Assembly: GCA_047495785.1 (NCBI GenBank)
Contig: JBLDXI010000015.1
Location: 3,472,001 to 3,536,000, forward strand
DNA length: 64,000 bases
Direction: 5' to 3'
Source of the DNA: Lepidodermella squamata
Taxonomy: Eukaryota; Animalia; Gastrotricha
A program made the position numbers and the translations under genes. Positions within the stretch are counted from its first letter, which is position 1. The number at the start of each line of letters is the position of its first letter. The notes under the pieces were generated by a model. That model saw only the letters and a program-made list of their open reading frames with translations, searched no databases and was not told where the DNA came from. Positions 9,201-38,510 of this stretch are shown one piece after another.

Positions 9201-12200
9201 CAGTTCTGGAAGTTGCCTTCGATTTTATCAACGTGAAATTTGAGGACGAAAAGCCTCGCTCGCTAATCAAATCTTACTCAGACCCTGATAGCTGTTTCCG
9301 CCTTAAATTTGATCCAGCCGAAAGTTCGCTATCCATCGCAACTGTTTGCTTGGACGTGTTTTTGGATCCAAATGCGTTAATTTGGCTGGCATCCAATTAT
9401 ATGGACAGCTTTTTGCAATCTAAACCAACCAAGCTGAAAGATGAATCGGAAAAATCGAGTGAAATTACCGGTGGGAAAATTAAAGGAATCGTATTTTCGT
9501 CCGAAAAAACTCGATTATGCCTCGATGGCGATCTTGAAATTTCAATCGGAGGAATTGGTCACAAAATTGGTGAACATGTTGATTTTTCAAACTTGACGGC
9601 GAAAAAGACATCAACATCGCTGTTATTGTTAAGCATCGCTAATTTCGCGATATCATCTTCAAAACACGAGGAAGATGCTCAGATTGTTTCTTTGATTAAA
9701 ATCTCCAGTGATCGAGTTATTAGACTGTCATGGAGTGTTTTGACCGAAAACTTGATCAAGGAAGTAATATCGGTTTACTCGAAAATGAGCGATGAAATCG
9801 GGAAGATTAGCGGCAGAACTGAACGAGCCGAAATTAAAAAATCATCACCCCGTTTAGAGGTCGAAATCAGCTCGAGATCATTCGACATCGCGATTTTGGA
9901 CCCGTTTGAACCAAAACGCGAAATCGTGCACTGTTTACTGCAAACGCCCATCGTTAAATTCGTGAAACCCTGCGAAAATGATTCAAATATTGAATGGGAA
10001 CTGGCGGTAAATGCGAATATAGTTCGTTTAGCGGACTGCATGTTCGATGTTGTTTTATTCGAATGTACTTCCGGCTCTGAGAAGGCCGGATCTCGCTCGA
10101 GTAGTTTGCCACTCTCCTCGTCATACCCAGGCGTATCAGCCGGGTCTTCGTTCACTGTGAACACGAATTACCTATTAAGGCCACTACCGCCTGTTCCAGA
10201 TTTTTCTTCGAGTCATCTGGCGATAAACCCCTTATTCCGGCTAAACGTGACAAGTGAAAAAACGGCGAGTGGCGCTTGTCGTAGGGTGGTTCACGCCAGT
10301 GCTGAAAATGGCTGTTCGTTATCTTTGACCGAAAAATGCCTACCGACCCTGTTAGAGGCGGTCGGAGTTGGAGCGAAAATGTTCCCGGTCATAACAACCG
10401 CCGATCAATTCGGCCGGCCAATTCACCGGCTCGAGAAGGAAATCAAACCATCGCCTGATGTTTTCGAATTCACTTTCTCGGCAAATTCTGTTCATTGCCG
10501 GTTGATGACCGGCGAAACTTTGGCGACGTCCTTCGTCTCAGCCCATGCCTCGGACGGTGTGCAACTTTGCTTCTCCAGCGTAGCGAATGTTCATCGACTG
10601 GACGGCTCTTTCAGCGCTACATCGCTCCAACTTTTCGACGATTCGAAGGATTTCGGCTCGTTATATTCATGCCGAGCCCTAGCTTCGGGCCTCACGGTTG
10701 AATTTTCAAAGGCCGGCCTACCCGATTACGAATTAACGCTGTTTGACTACGAAGTTCTGGCGAAAGTTAACATTGAAACAGTGAGTTACGTTCACACGAA
10801 GCGAATTTTCGTGGCGATTCTCGATTTCGTCGACCATTTGATGCAACATCGCGAGGCGTTGGCGAAAAAAGTCGCTAATCTACTCAAAATTCCTTGCCAA
10901 GAACTGCCAGGCCATGGCGCTCGACTTGATCTACAACTTACCCTGAACAACCCGACAATTGTTGTTCCGATTAACTATTCATCCGAGAAATCTATGGTTA
11001 TTCGATTAACCGACCCAATTGTTGCGACGAGCGCGTTTGCTTGGCAGGGCGAAAAAGGCACGAATTTGTGCACAAATAGGACTAATTCGTCGATTCCGCA
11101 ATTGCACCCGAAATTGGTCGCCCTCAAGCTGCACGAGCCATCAGCTAGCGATGGCTCGTCGATTTACCCGTGTTTAATCAACATTTTACGCTTTGAAGTG
11201 ACTGGGGCGAGCATTTATGACGGGACTTGGCGGCAACCTTCAATGTACCCGGAGGAAGTTGACCCAAATATTGAGGTTCTCGATTTTCTCAATTACAACA
11301 TTGAGGTTCATCGCGATACTTCCTGGTCGCAAACGCCGATTTCGCTCCTAATTCACATGGAACGTAACCTGGACGGGAATTTGAGTCGAAATGCGCCGGA
11401 TCTAGCGGTCTCGGTGCTTTTCGATAGACTGAATCTCGACGTTTCACGCGAGCAAGCCACGCGAATTTTTGTCATTCTCGATAAAAATTTCGGCGAAGAT
11501 TTAGGTGGACCGCCGCCTCAAGCAGTTCCGGAAAATATGACGTCATGGAAAAATATCGAAGTGGTTCTTTACGCGCAAGCCTGCCGCGCTAATTTGTTTG
11601 ACGATAATCACGAAGAGTTGGTCGGGGTTCGCCTTGACCCGGCTGCGTTGTCATTTTCCCGCTTTTCGAACAACTCACGAACGATCGATTTTAAATGCCA
11701 CGAAGTATTTCTATCCGACATTCGAGCGAATAAGTTGACTAACTCCGCGCCATTCATGGCCTTTCCTGTACTTGGTAACCAGCCTGATTCGATGCAATTC
11801 GAACTGAATTATTCGGCTAATAATGACTTGGTTCGAATGGGGTTCATGTTATCCTACGTTCGCATCGTTGTTCTAGGCGATTTTTGGCAACAGGCTACGA
11901 AATTCGTGACTAGCATCATGCAAAATCAAGACAACAACCAGCCCCCAGCAGCGTCAGTCGACCAAGGCCATAAATCAGCAGTTTTCGCAGTAGGGGATGA
12001 TGTGGTGTCCAGGGCCCCGTTACCGCCGAATGTGGCGCAAAAGCGCTCTTCCTCGATCAGAGTCAGCCTTCATCGGTCGGAAATTTGCTACCTGCTACCT
12101 CAGAGCGGCGATTTTCGGGGTTTCCTAACTGAAGTCACTGCGATTTTAGTCATGAGCCCTACCCGCTCGTTAACGCTGAACATTCCTTCGTTCAAAACCA

Positions 12201-32342: not shown

Positions 32343-35300
32343 TCACATAGCTTCGTAATAATCGATGCGGCGCTTCGTGTTGCCCTGACGGATCTGCTTC
32401 AGCGTTTTGAACTTGTCGCGGCCCTCGCGCACGTTCTTCTCGTGGATCTTGTCCGCCTCCGTCATTTTTGTCACATCAAACACCAGGCCGAACTCGGCGT
32501 TGATCGCCGACAAACGGTTCTGCACCGCCGCGTCCGAGCCCGCGCGCGGCCCGTCCAAGATCAGCTCGTCGACGTTGCGGCTCTCGCCGTTGCCGTTCGA
32601 CGTCAACTCGTGGCCGTTCGTCGCCGGGTGGCCGCCGGTCGAGTCCGAACCAGACTCCGAACCCGCGTCGTTGATGTGCGCCATGTGACTGCCGTTGTTG
32701 TTATTCACGCTGTGTTGCGGCTCTGGTTGCACCTGTTGTTGCGCCTTAAAAAATCAGAAAAATACCAAATTAATCATACATAAAATTCGAAATAAAAAGC
32801 AAAAAAAATAAAGCAAAATTCCCAGCATAAAAAAGCAAATTGGAAAAGTCCTCCTTAAATTTTTCGTGCAGGTTAAAATTGTCAGATTCCTATTAAACAC
32901 CTGTTCGGAGCTCGCAATTGCAGCTCTATAAGACGCTTCCATGTTATCCTATCAACAATATTTATCGAATTATTTCGCTAATCATACTATTGAGCGCAAG
33001 CAATTTCGCTAGGTAAAGTTTTATAATTTACCAAATAAGATTGGCTTGGACGAACAGATGTTCGTGAAGGCTAGAGAAAACACCAAGCAAACCGTTACCA
33101 AAGCAACCAAGGCAAATTATTTGAAATATTTTACGTACAATAGATTCATCGAGACGATCTCCGTCCACAGCATCGCCCTAATTTAATTGATACAAATTCG
33201 AGGGTACAAATATCCGTAAAATATTGAACGATAATTTAAAAAAAAATGAAGAAATATCGCAAGCGGTTTGTTTGAATAATTTTCGCGCAAGCATTCCTAA
33301 ATACATACAGAGCGAGAGGATGCAGTCGAATAACGACCAGTAGGCTCAGCATTGACCTGTCGAGCCACAGATGGCCTAATCTCATCGTTCTAAATAGATT
33401 TTTTAAGATGGGCTGTTAAATCGGAAATTTTCCGATCAACATACGTGAACTTCAGTTTTGTTGAAAATCGACTGCCGAACCGGCTCGTCAACCGCCCGCG
33501 AAGGCCGGGGAGTGGCCGGCAGGGCTACCTCGTTGCGGATCTGCTCTTTCTCTTTCGGCGCCAAACTACGCCCGGTTTCATTCAACGGCGCAGCGCCGCT
33601 CTGCATTTAAAACGCAGCAGATTAAAAAATAATGAATTATAAAACGCAAGCTATCCGCCTTAAAATACTCGCAAGCCGAAAACTTGCCATGGAAGACCTA
33701 GTAGATAAGCTGCTGCGAGTGCTAACAGAGCTACTGCTCGGCGAAATGTCCTAACGACAGCAATGTTAGATTCATGTTAATGCATGAAATAGGCCTCGGC
33801 TAAAAATGGAGAGAAAATAAACCGAGTGGACAAAAATTTGAAAAAATCCCCCTTAAAACTAGATTGTCCACTCGGTTATTTCCCCTTCAATAAGCCTGGT
33901 TTAAGATTAAATTACTCGTGGTATGGAAGATGTGGTCAAGCGTGGCTGCGATTCCTGATAGTGCAATTATTATTAGTGATCACGCCAATTGTTACGAATA
34001 TGAATATTTACTCTACGGCTGCTCGCTCGGCTACTAACACTTGTACGTCTCGAGTCAACCTGTTTGTTTTCAACAACATGTTTAGAAATTCTAGCCGCAA
34101 GCTTATATTTTCTTCAACAAACTGGTTCTGCGACGACGCGTGGGAAAATTTGCGTCTGATTGGTGTAAACCGTAGACACCCGAGTGGTCTGTCAAAATTG
34201 AGTTAAAATTAGTTGAAAAAATCGATCTGAGTCGAGACGCAAGCAAACGCAAGCATGAGGCCTGTCTCAAACTTGTTCATCCGGAACCGGGGTGACAGTA
34301 GACGCAGAGGACGAGGACGACTTTTTAATAGTAATAATAAATTTCTAAAATAATCCTGAAAAATCGGCCGAAATTTGCCATACCTCTCTTCGCTGCAATT
34401 CGTCGTGCACAACCGAGGCTTTTGGCTTGGGCGCAGTGGGCGGGCCGTTGGAAGACTGCGATCGCTGCGAGCTGGACGAGTGGCGAGGTTCGGGCGCGGT
34501 CGTCACGTGCCGCACGTCTTCGACGGTCGACGTCCGGTTGACGACATTCGACAACTGCTGTTCCTTTTCGCGCTCGCGTTGACGCGCCGCTTCGAGCTCT
34601 TCGTGCAGCCGCTGCACTTCCTCGGCTCGCTGATGCGCGACGAGTTCGCGCTCTTCGGCCTGGCGACGCGCTTCCGCCGCTTCTTCGGCGAGGCGCTGCT
34701 TCTCCTCGACGCTCGACTCGGCCTCGAGGCGAAGCTGCTCGGCGCGCTCACGCAACGCTTCGATTTCTTGCCGCTCCTGGTCGGCCGCTTGCTTTTCTCG
34801 CTCGATAGCCGCCATTCGATGCTCAAGGTCTTGAGTGGCACGCTTGCTCTGTTCGAGTTCTGAAAAATTTAATAAAAATAAATTAAAATAAAATCCTCCT
34901 TAAAAATTATGTAAAAACCCTAAAATTTGAACCTTCTCTAAGCCGTTGTTCTTCAAGAAAAACTTCGCCATCAGGGGAGTGGAAATCCTCCCCGTCAGGC
35001 TTGAGGGTGGATTCACTCGCCGCGTCGTAATTGGCGTTAGCCAGCGTTATCTCCCGGCTTTCAGTCTCGGAACTATCCATAGTGATAATAACAACTACTG
35101 TACTACAATATAGCGCGAGTCTCTATAATATTGATTTGTGCACTCGGAAAAGTTGCATACACGTAGCTGCAAAATGAAAATGACGCTGGTTATTACCTCT
35201 GCGGCGCCGACGCTTCGGAAAGCAGCATGCCATTATTATTCCGGTATTTAAATTGCGAATAAAAAATGATTAGCTACGACCCTAAACCGGATAACTACTA

Positions 35301-37129
35301 CTAGTCAACCGCAGTCCAAGCGGATGACGATGGTCAAGTCACGCAACGTCATACCGGTACAAATTTGTCGTAATAGCATCGACTCATCGGCGTAGTAATA
35401 GTAATAGTCATCTTCTTACCTTGCCTGGCTCGCGACACTTCCTGCTCGTACTCGTTGATTCGGCGACGCAGTTCGTTCTTTTCGCGTTCGGCCGCTTCCA
35501 TCGCTTCTTTGGCCAGGCGCAGCTGTTCCCTAGATTCAAAAATACATTCAGATTAGAACCAAAAATAAACACGCCAGTGCACATTTTTTTAGCCTAATAA
35601 ATTCATAAAATTACGACTGGTCTAAGATTTTTTCAAACGTGTTGACCCATTTTTCTAATTATCAAAATATATAAAATCCGCCTTAATATTAGCTTCGAAG
35701 GCTTTTAACGCACACGAGACATCCTTGAGGTGGGCAGGTTCGGAAATTTGACCCTGAATTTGACATTCCACGCCTAAATCCGGTGTTTTCAAATTTGGTC
35801 CTCGAGCTAACAAATTTTCATAAATAGGATCTTAAACTTGAATTATAAGCTATCTAAAATTTTAAATCGGAGGCCTCTATTTTGCATAGTTATGTGGTAT
35901 ATTGTCATTTTTCACTCATTAACTTATTTTTCAACTTGTTTGATAGAATTTTTAGGGTTAGGGTTAGAGGTGGTTTTTGGGTAATTTCAGAATAAATTTG
36001 TAAAATAGTTTAAAAATGCCCCATAATTATGCACAAATATTCACACCCTTAATTAATTTTCCTTGAAATTAAAAAATGATTTTGATGAAAAAATTGATGA
36101 TTTGACATCAATTTCCTTGGAGCAAAAACTTAAATCTACGAAATTTCTTGCCACCTTGAAAACTCACTTTTGGGATTGTTTGCGCTCTTTCTCTTCCCGA
36201 GCTCGTTGTTTCATCTCTTGGACTTCGATAGTGTCGGCCCGCCGTCTTCGCATGTACAATTCGTGGTTGCCCATGCACAACGCGAGGATGCGCTTGTTAA
36301 CGCGCAGGCGTTCGGCGTAGAAGATGAAATCCGGCGATCGCTTGTCCGTTGGCTTAATCGTAAACTTCCGGTCCGAAAATGAAATGTTGCGAATTTCACT
36401 CCACGGAAAACCAACTGACGGGTTCAGTTTATTGTTTTTCTGATAGATATTAATGCCCATGGCGTCGATGCCGAGCAGCAATTCCGTGTTTTTGCGATTT
36501 TTAATCGGGAAATAATTCACGCCGTACATTTCGAGCTCTTGGGCGATTTTCAAGTACTCCATCATCGCCTCGTCCCGGTCCATGCCGTGATGCTCCGCCC
36601 AGAATTTGTGCAGTTTCGCGACGAATTGCTCCGGTGCCATTTGGTACTGCTCGATGACGCGTTTCGGTAGGAAACGCTCAGGCGCGATGGGCCTTTCGGC
36701 GACTGAGCGAGGGTCGAAGTCGCCGCGGAGTGCTTGGGCGGCGAGGGAGGCCAACAAAATGGCGGTTTCAGGCGGGCAGAACACTTCATCACTGACTATA
36801 GACTCCATGACTTGGAGGAAAAACAAGCGTTGAGTAACTTCCATAATCAACTCATCGGCAACATCTTCCGGGTAAAATTTGACACGAAAACGAAATTTGA
36901 AGGGCGTTTCTTTCTTCAGGTCGTGGCTGAGGACTTTCTTGTTGAGTTTGAGCCAACCGTCGTCGTTTTTCCGGTCTTCGTACTTGAGGCCGAAGAACCA
37001 CACCTCGCGGAGGCCGATCATTTTGGCGACCTGGTCGAAGAGTTGGCGACCGGTGGTGCTTGGCTGGATCGAGAACTCCAATTCGGCGTCCATCGTCGTG
37101 ACGAGGACGTTGACCTGGCGGGCGGACAT
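32343..37129 (-). CDS. ERM family protein (moesin/ezrin/radixin homolog); core exons 37129-36168, 35529-35420, 34859-34384, 32744-32343, with a possible 72-nt cassette exon 33600-33529
   Basis: FERM domain [12 protein letters not shown]...[10 protein letters not shown]...KFYPEDV...[17 protein letters not shown]...[12 protein letters not shown]...[19 protein letters not shown]; E/R/Q coiled coil; [32 protein letters not shown] with the regulatory Thr. Confidence 0.96.
34933..35080 (-). CDS. Second candidate alternative first (or cassette) exon of ERM encoding [49 protein letters not shown]
   Basis: 148-nt open, GC-richer segment ending GAA G|gttcaa (phase 1), followed by a typical 73-nt AT-rich intron to the acceptor at 34860. 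Confidence 0.6.
35197..35233 (-). CDS. Candidate alternative first exon of ERM encoding [12 protein letters not shown]
   Basis: aataATG GCA TGC TGC TTT CCG AAG CGT CGG CGC CGC AGA G|gtaata: 37 nt, phase-1 donor matching the phase-1 acceptor of the ERM exon at 34859. Confidence 0.6.
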
Positions 37130-38510
37130 TTTTCAACACGAAAAATCAGTGACAGAGTAATAGAATTTAAAATAACACAAAAACTAGTCTGAAACAGCAA
37201 CGTGATGATGACGCCATTAAAACGACGCTATTAATTTGCAAGCCAACACAATTTCAGTATATGGGCGCGTAAAGCAAATATACGAGCTCGCGTGTCACCC
37301 CCTCCTATCCACCTTAATGGTGATGGGCAGGCTCATCTTCGCCCCGCTCACAATAAACAACACCGGTGCGAAATTTCACGGCCAATAAAGTTCGCACAGC
37401 ATTGTATGTATGTGTGTGATAAAGGCGCGAGTCGCTGAAATTTTCTTCCGAACAACGCGCCGTGACCGCCTTGAAACAATGGCGCGAGGCCAAACCGTCG
37501 AAGCAATAATAACAATAATAATAATATAGTAGTAATCCGGAAGTGCAGGCGCGATGCGCATTTCACCTCCCAGCTATTACTACAACGTGAGCAAGCGTCT
37601 TCCCGTCTACACAAAAACGGGGCCGCATAATAATTAGTAGTGGCGATGATGAGCTAAGCGGCGCACGTATTTTAGCATAAAAATTCAACAAGCAAAGAGC
37701 ACTGTAAAAATTCCACCTTAATAAAATCGTAATCTTAACAAAATGCAAATAAAGTGTAAACACAACTCTACTACAACTACTGCTCCACTTCAGTCAAGAA
37801 ACGAATTCATTGCTAGTGAAGCATGAAAAAACCGACAAGCGATATGAGAGAAAAATATATCGCCGTTATTAATAGCCGAATATAAATTTTTCAGCGTCCG
37901 ACACACCTACTCTCGGACCGGCAACTATTACTGCCCGATTTTCGGGTTTGCGATAAGACCGCCGCCCCCTCTCCCAACAAAATACATCTAGTGCATTGCG
38001 GCTCGTGTGAAATTAACGACATACACTAGCGACCAGTCGGTTTCGTATTTCACACCAACACGCCGGTAAAACATGCGTTTATTGTTTATTAACACAAGTG
38101 GAGAGAACCCAATACACTATCCGCCCCTTTTTCGCCCAAGATAAGACTGGTCATGCTTCTCTACCAAGAAATTGCGTCTCAGTGGCAACGGCTACTAATT
38201 GCAAAAAAAAAGCATCACTCACCTGCTTTCGCGACATCTTCGTTTGGCACTCAGCAAGCAATCAGTATTTAAGTTTTTAAAAAACCTAATTAAGAAAACA
38301 AATTCAATATTATAATCAATTATTCTGCTCTATGATCAGACAAGAACAAGTCAAAAGAATTACAAAAGACACATTGATCTACAAGCGATAGATTTATAAC
38401 ACAACATTTTGTGAGCGATTGAAATCTTCTGTTTGAGAGAAAGAATCGTCGTCGTAGCGGGCATCGGAAAACATGGAATAAAAGTTGCGTAGTGATATTG
38501 CACAGGACGC

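Follow-up and report, generated by a model that had tools for sequence, protein, structure and literature searches.

The stretch analysed here, a 64,000-nucleotide (nt) window of the genome of the gastrotrich Lepidodermella squamata (contig JBLDXI010000015.1, positions 3,472,001 to 3,536,000 of the forward strand), carries on its minus strand an otherwise ordinary gene of the ERM (ezrin/radixin/moesin) family, and the intron between the second and third exons of this gene contains a candidate alternative start. An open reading frame (ORF) that begins there with two early cysteines and a basic cluster could be spliced into exon 3, giving an ERM product in which a short head stands in place of the FERM domain. 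A start of the same design was found in the orthologous intron of a close relative. The FERM-less isoform is probably real and conserved, and it is unconfirmed by RNA; that ERM intron 2 holds one or more conserved alternative first coding exons feeding exon 3 is a claim that the sequence leads us to hold at about even confidence.

The candidate Met-Ala-Cys-Cys start in ERM intron 2 and its counterpart in a relative

The host gene is a true ERM gene, because Pfam searches of 37129-36170 returned FERM_N (3.3e-16), FERM_M (1.2e-22) and FERM_C (3.6e-26), all in exon 1, and the ORF of the last exon (32343-32732) returned ERM_C (5.6e-22), with the conserved regulatory Thr, of the pattern K-Y/F-K-T-L-R/K-Q-I-R, in its C-terminal end. 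The FERM exon was 60-67% identical to named radixin, moesin and ezrin proteins. Exon 3 encodes, after the FERM domain as in ERMs, a charged region of helix type rich in E, R, K, Q and A; searched alone, this exon gave no Pfam match at E ≤ 0.01, ERM_helical being the family looked for. The RNA evidence came from a single run (X1) that was compared as contigs, and the spliced contigs show that the run is RNA. These contigs joined 36167 to 35528 and 35420 to 34859 and contained eleven further junctions downstream. Exons 2 and 3 are therefore separated by an intron at 35419-34860 (560 nt, phase 1), whose acceptor, TTTTTCAG|AA at 34860/34859, was confirmed by contig 4.

Within this intron, the codons from 35233 read ATG GCA TGC TGC TTT CCG AAG CGT CGG CGC CGC AGA, followed by a G at 35197. 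The 12-residue head thus encoded starts with Met-Ala-Cys-Cys and ends with six basic residues, KRRRRR. Its ATG (35233-35231) is preceded by AATAATA, with A at -3 and G at +4 (wider context AATAATAATGG), and the nearest upstream sense ATG lies at 35352, with a leader of 116 nt free of ATG before 35233. An earlier note on this DNA had described a 12-codon ORF ending at G|GTAATA in phase 1 and an in-frame join from 35197 to 34859, and both were read here as stated: exon 3 opens with AA CTC GAA, the G at 35197 plus AA gives Glu, and the frame of the direct join is continuous with the protein sequence that the note gave. Phase compatibility was nevertheless discarded as evidence for a start exon, because a phase-1 GT comes before any stop for 6 of the 9 ATGs on the sense strand of the intron, which makes a phase match uninformative. 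The pattern ATG-NNN-TGY-TGY occurred twice on the two strands of the window (128 kb), and the start at 35233 was the sole copy with at least four lysines or arginines (K/R) among the next 10 residues. Read without splicing, the ORF runs for 36 codons in intron frame 0 and then meets a TAG.

The comparison between species rests on one close relative, known from the metagenome contigs L001-L004. When the FERM exon was used as a query, one protein (P0001) matched with 86% identity and every other match with 67% or less. This protein is encoded on the four contigs, which are syntenic with the window over OPLAH, an IRS/FRS2-like gene, NFU1, Rogdi, VMA21 and the ERM gene. The two species nevertheless lie well apart: their exon 3 proteins share 55% identity, and blastn aligned coding exons only (about 75%), the introns being unalignable. 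The orthologous intron of the relative (L001 11208-11844) contains a 145-codon ORF on the sense strand that starts at 11309 with MSCCLNLKRQKFKPSK. Cysteines at positions 3 and 4 beside a basic cluster at the extreme N-terminus are present in both species, and in the relative this head, MSCC plus a basic stretch, continues as one uninterrupted ORF into about 125 acidic residues. The N-terminal motif was identical in all four contigs, and MSCC was the sole MxCC start in L001 (31.6 kb, both strands). In 20,000 first-order Markov simulations of the relative's intron, an MxCC start arose in 0.8% (0.008), and an MxCC start with at least four K/R in the next 10 residues and an open frame arose in 0.02% (about 2e-4). 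Conservation of the peptide in relatives had been named in advance by the earlier note, and the presence of this start, together with a phase-1 donor, in the orthologous intron of one relative is therefore an independent test, and one that came out in favor of the start.

In neither species was an AG found between the upstream in-frame stop and the ATG. Since no in-frame acceptor exists upstream, the MACC/MSCC part must follow an initiation codon, and the possibility that it is a cassette exon was excluded. The relative's alternative exon (L001 11309-11735) comprises 142 codons plus 1 base and ends in phase 1 at GAT GAA G|GT TCT (11735|11736); a stop follows two codons on, and exon 3 lies 109 nt downstream. 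A second phase-1 donor, G|GTCATA, lies directly after its basic stretch at 11360.

The acidic ORF and the likely exon structure

In the window, the MACC frame reopens past the TAG into an acidic ORF (35097-34933) that ends at GAAG|GTTCAA (34933|34932) in phase 1; GAAG|GTTC in phase 1 ends the alternative ORF in both species. The 99-nt segment between the head and the acidic ORF has a length inside the 55-165 nt that is usual for the RNA-confirmed introns of the gene (most of them fall in this range), and its donor is like GTAATT and GTAAAT, both of which are among the confirmed donors. The GTT donor of the acidic exon is of a type that is used at two RNA-confirmed introns of the same gene. Donor consensus is loose in this genome, because one GC-AG intron is confirmed in addition to these two GTT donors; its boundary, ATG|GCAAGT, belongs to the linker intron 33601-33687 (minus strand). 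Joining 35197 to 35097 and 34933 to 34859 would give a continuous frame that enters exon 3 as ...LRE-E-LEQSKR.

Composition and codon usage were compared along these segments. The guanine-cytosine (GC) content of the window changed stepwise at every proposed boundary, being 0.65 in the start exon (35233-35197), 0.38 in the 99-nt segment, 0.50 in the acidic exon and 0.16 in the last 73 nt; for comparison, it was 0.52-0.64 in the canonical exons and 0.31 in intron 1. In the relative, the alternative exon had a GC content of 0.45, compared to 0.34 in both of its flanks and 0.36 in intron 1. Codon usage was scored as log-odds, with the coding exons of the species in question as a small training set. 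The relative's alternative exon scored +0.50 bits/codon in frame, compared to -0.38 and -1.13 in the other sense frames and +0.07, -0.13 and -0.24 in the antisense frames, and its introns were negative in all frames. The acidic exon of the window scored +0.06 in the MACC frame, compared to -0.52 and -1.16, and the 99-nt segment was negative in all frames. The alternative exon thus has exon-like composition, a frame-specific codon signal that is strong in the relative and weak in the window, and splice sites like the 13 RNA-confirmed ones.

Because the relative's head runs directly into acidic residues and the resumed frame of the window ends at an identical GAAG|GTTC donor, a head followed by an acidic spacer, the coiled coil and the C-ERMAD is the more likely product. 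The likely structure on this reading of the sequence is a start exon, a 99-nt intron, an acidic exon, a 73-nt intron and exon 3 (Table 1). Of the isoform that the earlier note had proposed, the FERM-less design with an intronic Cys-Cys start is retained and is kept in the relative; the direct join of 35197 to 34859 is less likely, an acidic exon being probable in between, though a short form that lacks the acidic part may also be made.

Evidence against the proposed alternative exon and competing explanations

Several results weigh against an alternative first exon. The depth of run X1 was 0 over 34927-35324, while the canonical ERM exons had a word depth of about 100-400; the bin 34728-34926 had a depth of 86.5, which is wholly explained by exon 3. 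The RNA contig gave the canonical join of 35420 to 34859 only and no joint of the alternative exon, and reads using the 35196 donor, which the earlier note had named as a check, left no trace in this run. Since contigs lose rare forms, the zero depth limits the isoform to a very small fraction in the X1 sample and does not mean absence. Furthermore, in the relative two out-of-frame ATGs lie 10-13 nt upstream of MSCC. Conservation is known from one relative only, and the acidic parts of the two species are unalignable. At the junctions, the two species resemble each other weakly in nucleotide sequence (p 0.014 and 0.11), and the resemblance includes low complexity of the TAGTAG type: at the proposed acceptor it amounts to 14/17 (p 0.014), and such low complexity is also found upstream of the ATG. 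Of the 16 variable sites among L001-L004, the alternative exon holds 5, with 3 non-synonymous and 2 synonymous changes (too few for a selection test), and this number of changes suggests that the acidic part is weakly constrained. The alternative coding sequence of the window scored only about 0 in codon usage, which was the best of the six frames.

Lastly, the alternative exon has no homologue elsewhere in the protein, phmmer, ESM Atlas and Pfam searches. For the 145-residue exon of the relative, the homologous-protein search, phmmer (1.84 billion representatives) and ESM Atlas returned the query only. The head ORF of the window had one sub-threshold Pfam match, to the unrelated family NICE-1 (E 9.3). 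Two JGI metagenome scans for further relatives, one with an exon 3 alignment and one with a FERM alignment, gave no matches, and the top non-self match of NFU1 (P0123), considered as a third syntenic species, was rejected as a bacterial locus. Against named proteins, NFU1 reached 52-62% identity, with the matches scattered among insects, vertebrates and others, so that the animal has no close annotated relative.

The competitor that survives best, which we nevertheless regard as unlikely, is a nested independent gene that would encode a lipid-anchored, acidic and disordered protein like GAP-43/BASP1, with its own stop and never spliced to exon 3. Read through its GT, the alternative ORF ends in ..EGSNFRVFT in the window and in ..EGSP in the relative, each followed by a stop that comes 8 and 2 codons, respectively, after the GT. 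Gene calling recognised the relative's ORF, which has both its ATG and its stop, as a gene; both species have an ATTAAA hexamer between the end of the ORF and exon 3, and a head with an acidic tail could be a self-sufficient design. However, a nested gene would have to fit its 3' untranslated region and cleavage site into just the 73 or 109 nt that precede the exon 3 acceptor, and it likewise has no RNA support in run X1. In addition, GAAG|GTTC is in phase 1 in both species, in a region that is otherwise unalignable, and so fits the phase of exon 3, and the GC content of the window drops from 0.50 to 0.16 exactly at the donor GT.

Less probable still is the exact model of the earlier note as the main product, in which the 12-codon exon is joined directly to 34859 with no acidic spacer. 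This join is in phase, its donor GAG|GTAATA is like confirmed donors of the ERM gene, and a phase-1 G|GTCATA follows the basic stretch of the relative as well (11360). Yet it leaves the conserved acidic ORF unexplained, with its exon-like GC content, codon usage and phase-1 donor; head and acidic part are one uninterrupted ORF in the relative, and the direct joint is absent from run X1.

We assign a similarly low probability to chance or decay, that is, to ORFs that are unexpressed, with a resemblance that is a coincidence or a relic and a relative's ORF that stays open because purine-rich, low-complexity DNA lacks stops. The zero RNA depth and the stop that interrupts the window ORF agree with this explanation, other frames of the relative's purine-rich stretch are open for 55-80 codons, polymorphism is denser in the relative's alternative exon than in its introns, and phase-1 GTs are common. 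However, the simulated frequency of an MxCC start with a polybasic stretch in the orthologous intron is low, no other such start occurs in L001, and the codon score is specific to one frame (+0.50 versus -0.38 and -1.13). Moreover, the GC steps meet the proposed splice sites in both species, and the stop of the window falls in a GT-AG segment of a length divisible by three.

It is very improbable that the acidic exon 35097-34933 is a cassette of full-length ERM between exons 2 and 3, with the MACC ORF being just a short upstream ORF that has nothing to do with it. The phases would allow such a cassette, since exon 2 ends in phase 1 and both ends of the acidic exon (165 nt, no stop) are in phase 1, but in the RNA contig exon 3 follows exon 2 directly, the acidic exon has a depth of 0, and the conserved Cys-Cys/basic start, fused in frame to the acidic part in the relative, would be unexplained.

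The host ERM gene and its surroundings

The exons of the canonical gene and the proposed alternative segments are collected in Table 1.

Table 1. Canonical exons of the ERM gene and proposed alternative segments in intron 2, by position in the window
Feature	Position	Strand	Remarks
Canonical ERM exon 1	37129-36168	minus	whole FERM domain in a single exon; absent from the proposed isoform
Canonical ERM exon 2	35529-35420	minus	ends CAAG|GTAAGA, phase 1; RNA contig 4
Putative alternative start exon, coding part	35233-35197	minus	12 codons plus first base (G) of a split codon; donor G|GTAATA from 35196
Putative intron, 99 nt	35196-35098	minus	GTAATA...GTAGTACAG; multiple of 3; holds a single in-frame TAG
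Putative acidic exon, 165 nt, 55 codons	35097-34933	minus	phase 1 at both ends; ends ...EEQRLRE plus G; donor GAAG|GTTCAA from 34932
Putative intron, 73 nt	34932-34860	minus	acidic exon to exon 3; uses the RNA-confirmed acceptor
ERM exon 3, coiled-coil / alpha-helical region	34859-34384	minus	phase-1 acceptor; would receive the alternative 5' exons
Small linker exon	34273-34320	minus	RNA contigs
Small linker exon	34123-34188	minus	RNA contigs
Small linker exon	34012-34059	minus	RNA contigs
Small linker exon	33916-33954	minus	RNA contigs
Small linker exon	33688-33750	minus	RNA contigs
Small linker exon	33445-33600	minus	RNA contigs
Small linker exon	33309-33389	minus	RNA contigs
Small linker exon	33139-33177	minus	RNA contigs
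Small linker exon	33031-33070	minus	RNA contigs
Last ERM exon, C-ERMAD and stop	32744-32343	minus	common to all isoforms; RNA joints to 32743/32744

The linker of the ERM gene (32745-34383, minus strand) was present in two RNA forms among the contigs. In the first, exon 3 (34384) is joined straight to the last exon (32744) and 1639 nt are skipped; in the second, nine small exons of about 38-156 nt code for an insert, rich in Ser and Thr, that separates the coiled coil from the C-ERMAD. A comparable multi-exon linker is also present in the relative. Intron 1 measures 638 nt in the window and 156 nt in the relative, and in the window it holds a short telomere-like run of CCCTAA-type repeats (ctaaccctaaccctaaa) at about 35945-35965.

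At the 5' end of the gene, RNA contig 6 matches 37005-37158 and carries 30 extra 5' letters that are not found at this place (37158-37159). No AG precedes 37158, and the extra letters may represent a leader, an upstream exon or an artefact. Low-depth contigs with joints between opposite strands lie further upstream of the gene, at 37680-37939. A five-codon ATG ORF (MSRKQ; 38222-38236, minus strand), located between VMA21 and the start of the ERM gene, ends at CAG|GTGAGT, and a good acceptor, TTGCTGTTTCAG|, is found at 37189, which is 60 nt before the ERM ATG. The ORF may represent an upstream exon of the ERM gene, in a region of very low RNA depth.

The neighbouring genes OPLAH, IRS/FRS2-like, NFU1, Rogdi and VMA21 are far more compact in the relative (L001 1-9141) than in the window (38545-59623). 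Because the relative keeps the same neighbours in far less space and its OPLAH is nearly intron-free, the genome expanded by introns and repeats is, of this pair, that of the window.

The proposed isoform, related systems and significance

If the transcript is made and spliced as we infer from the sequence, translation would begin at 35233 with Met-Ala-Cys-Cys and the six basic residues. The donor at 35196 would be used, the 99-nt intron would be spliced out with the 55-codon acidic exon following next, and the GAAG|GT donor of this exon would be spliced to exon 3 at 34859 in phase 1. Such a protein would combine a di-cysteine and polybasic head with a disordered acidic spacer, followed by the coiled coil, linker and actin-binding C-ERMAD of the ERM gene, and it would have no FERM domain. 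By analogy with GAP-43, Cys3 and Cys4 may be S-acylated with the help of the basic cluster, and the acylated head would then hold the coiled coil and the C-ERMAD at the membrane, tying F-actin without FERM or phosphatidylinositol 4,5-bisphosphate (PIP2) binding. As the earlier note had proposed, the head may be palmitoylated and the product may be a constitutively open membrane-actin linker; the KRRRRR cluster could equally act as a nuclear-localisation-like signal instead. ERM autoinhibition requires binding of the FERM domain to the C-ERMAD. The FERM-less product would for this reason escape autoinhibition, with its actin-binding tail permanently exposed, or, alternatively, it might bind in trans to the FERM domain of full-length ERM.

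ERM proteins are the textbook linkers between membrane and cortex and are governed by a head-to-tail lock. The alternative product would have the coiled coil, the linker and the C-ERMAD in common with canonical members (ezrin, radixin and moesin; Drosophila Moesin and C. elegans ERM-1). Unlike them, it would have no FERM domain; a short acylatable and basic head would replace binding to PIP2 and receptor tails, and the intramolecular lock between FERM domain and C-ERMAD could not form. To our knowledge, ERM tails without a FERM domain have mainly been described as engineered constructs. A full-text literature search gave no natural ERM isoform that lacks the FERM domain or carries a lipid anchor, and this is only an absence of evidence. 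The host gene is itself ordinary.

The head resembles the N-terminus of GAP-43 (neuromodulin), MLCCMRRTKQVEK, in which Cys3 and Cys4 are S-acylated and needed for membrane association, the double Cys mutant being cytosolic (PMC2994833). Like GAP-43, the alternative ORF of both species has Met-x-Cys-Cys at residues 1-4, a basic cluster and then an acidic low-complexity region. Unlike family members, however, the two are alike in motif and composition, a likeness of how they may work and not one of descent: no homology to neuromodulin was found, with no Pfam match (E ≤ 10) for the relative's exon and only the query returned by phmmer. The short dystrophins Dp260, Dp140 and Dp71 offer a parallel in gene structure, since they are isoforms from internal promoters that lack the N-terminal binding domain and keep the C-terminal modules (PMC7372313). 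As in these dystrophins, an internal start within an intron would remove the N-terminal domain and leave the C-terminal modules in place. Unlike in the dystrophins, the unique first exon would add a membrane-targeting device and would not merely remove a domain.

Comparison of orthologous introns can thus recover very short first exons that are missed by gene callers and by shallow RNA data. Tentatively, and with more doubt than we attach to the exon itself, these observations may mean that a little-sampled animal lineage grafted a GAP-43-like acylated and basic head with an acidic spacer onto the ERM coiled coil and actin-binding tail by way of an intronic start, creating a FERM-less, autoinhibition-free tether that would be under the control of reversible S-acylation instead of PIP2 and Thr phosphorylation and could, in addition, titrate in trans the FERM domain of full-length ERM. 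If true, this would be a natural and evolutionarily retained exchange of the FERM domain for a lipid anchor, and thus a second, lock-free use of the same actin-binding tail.

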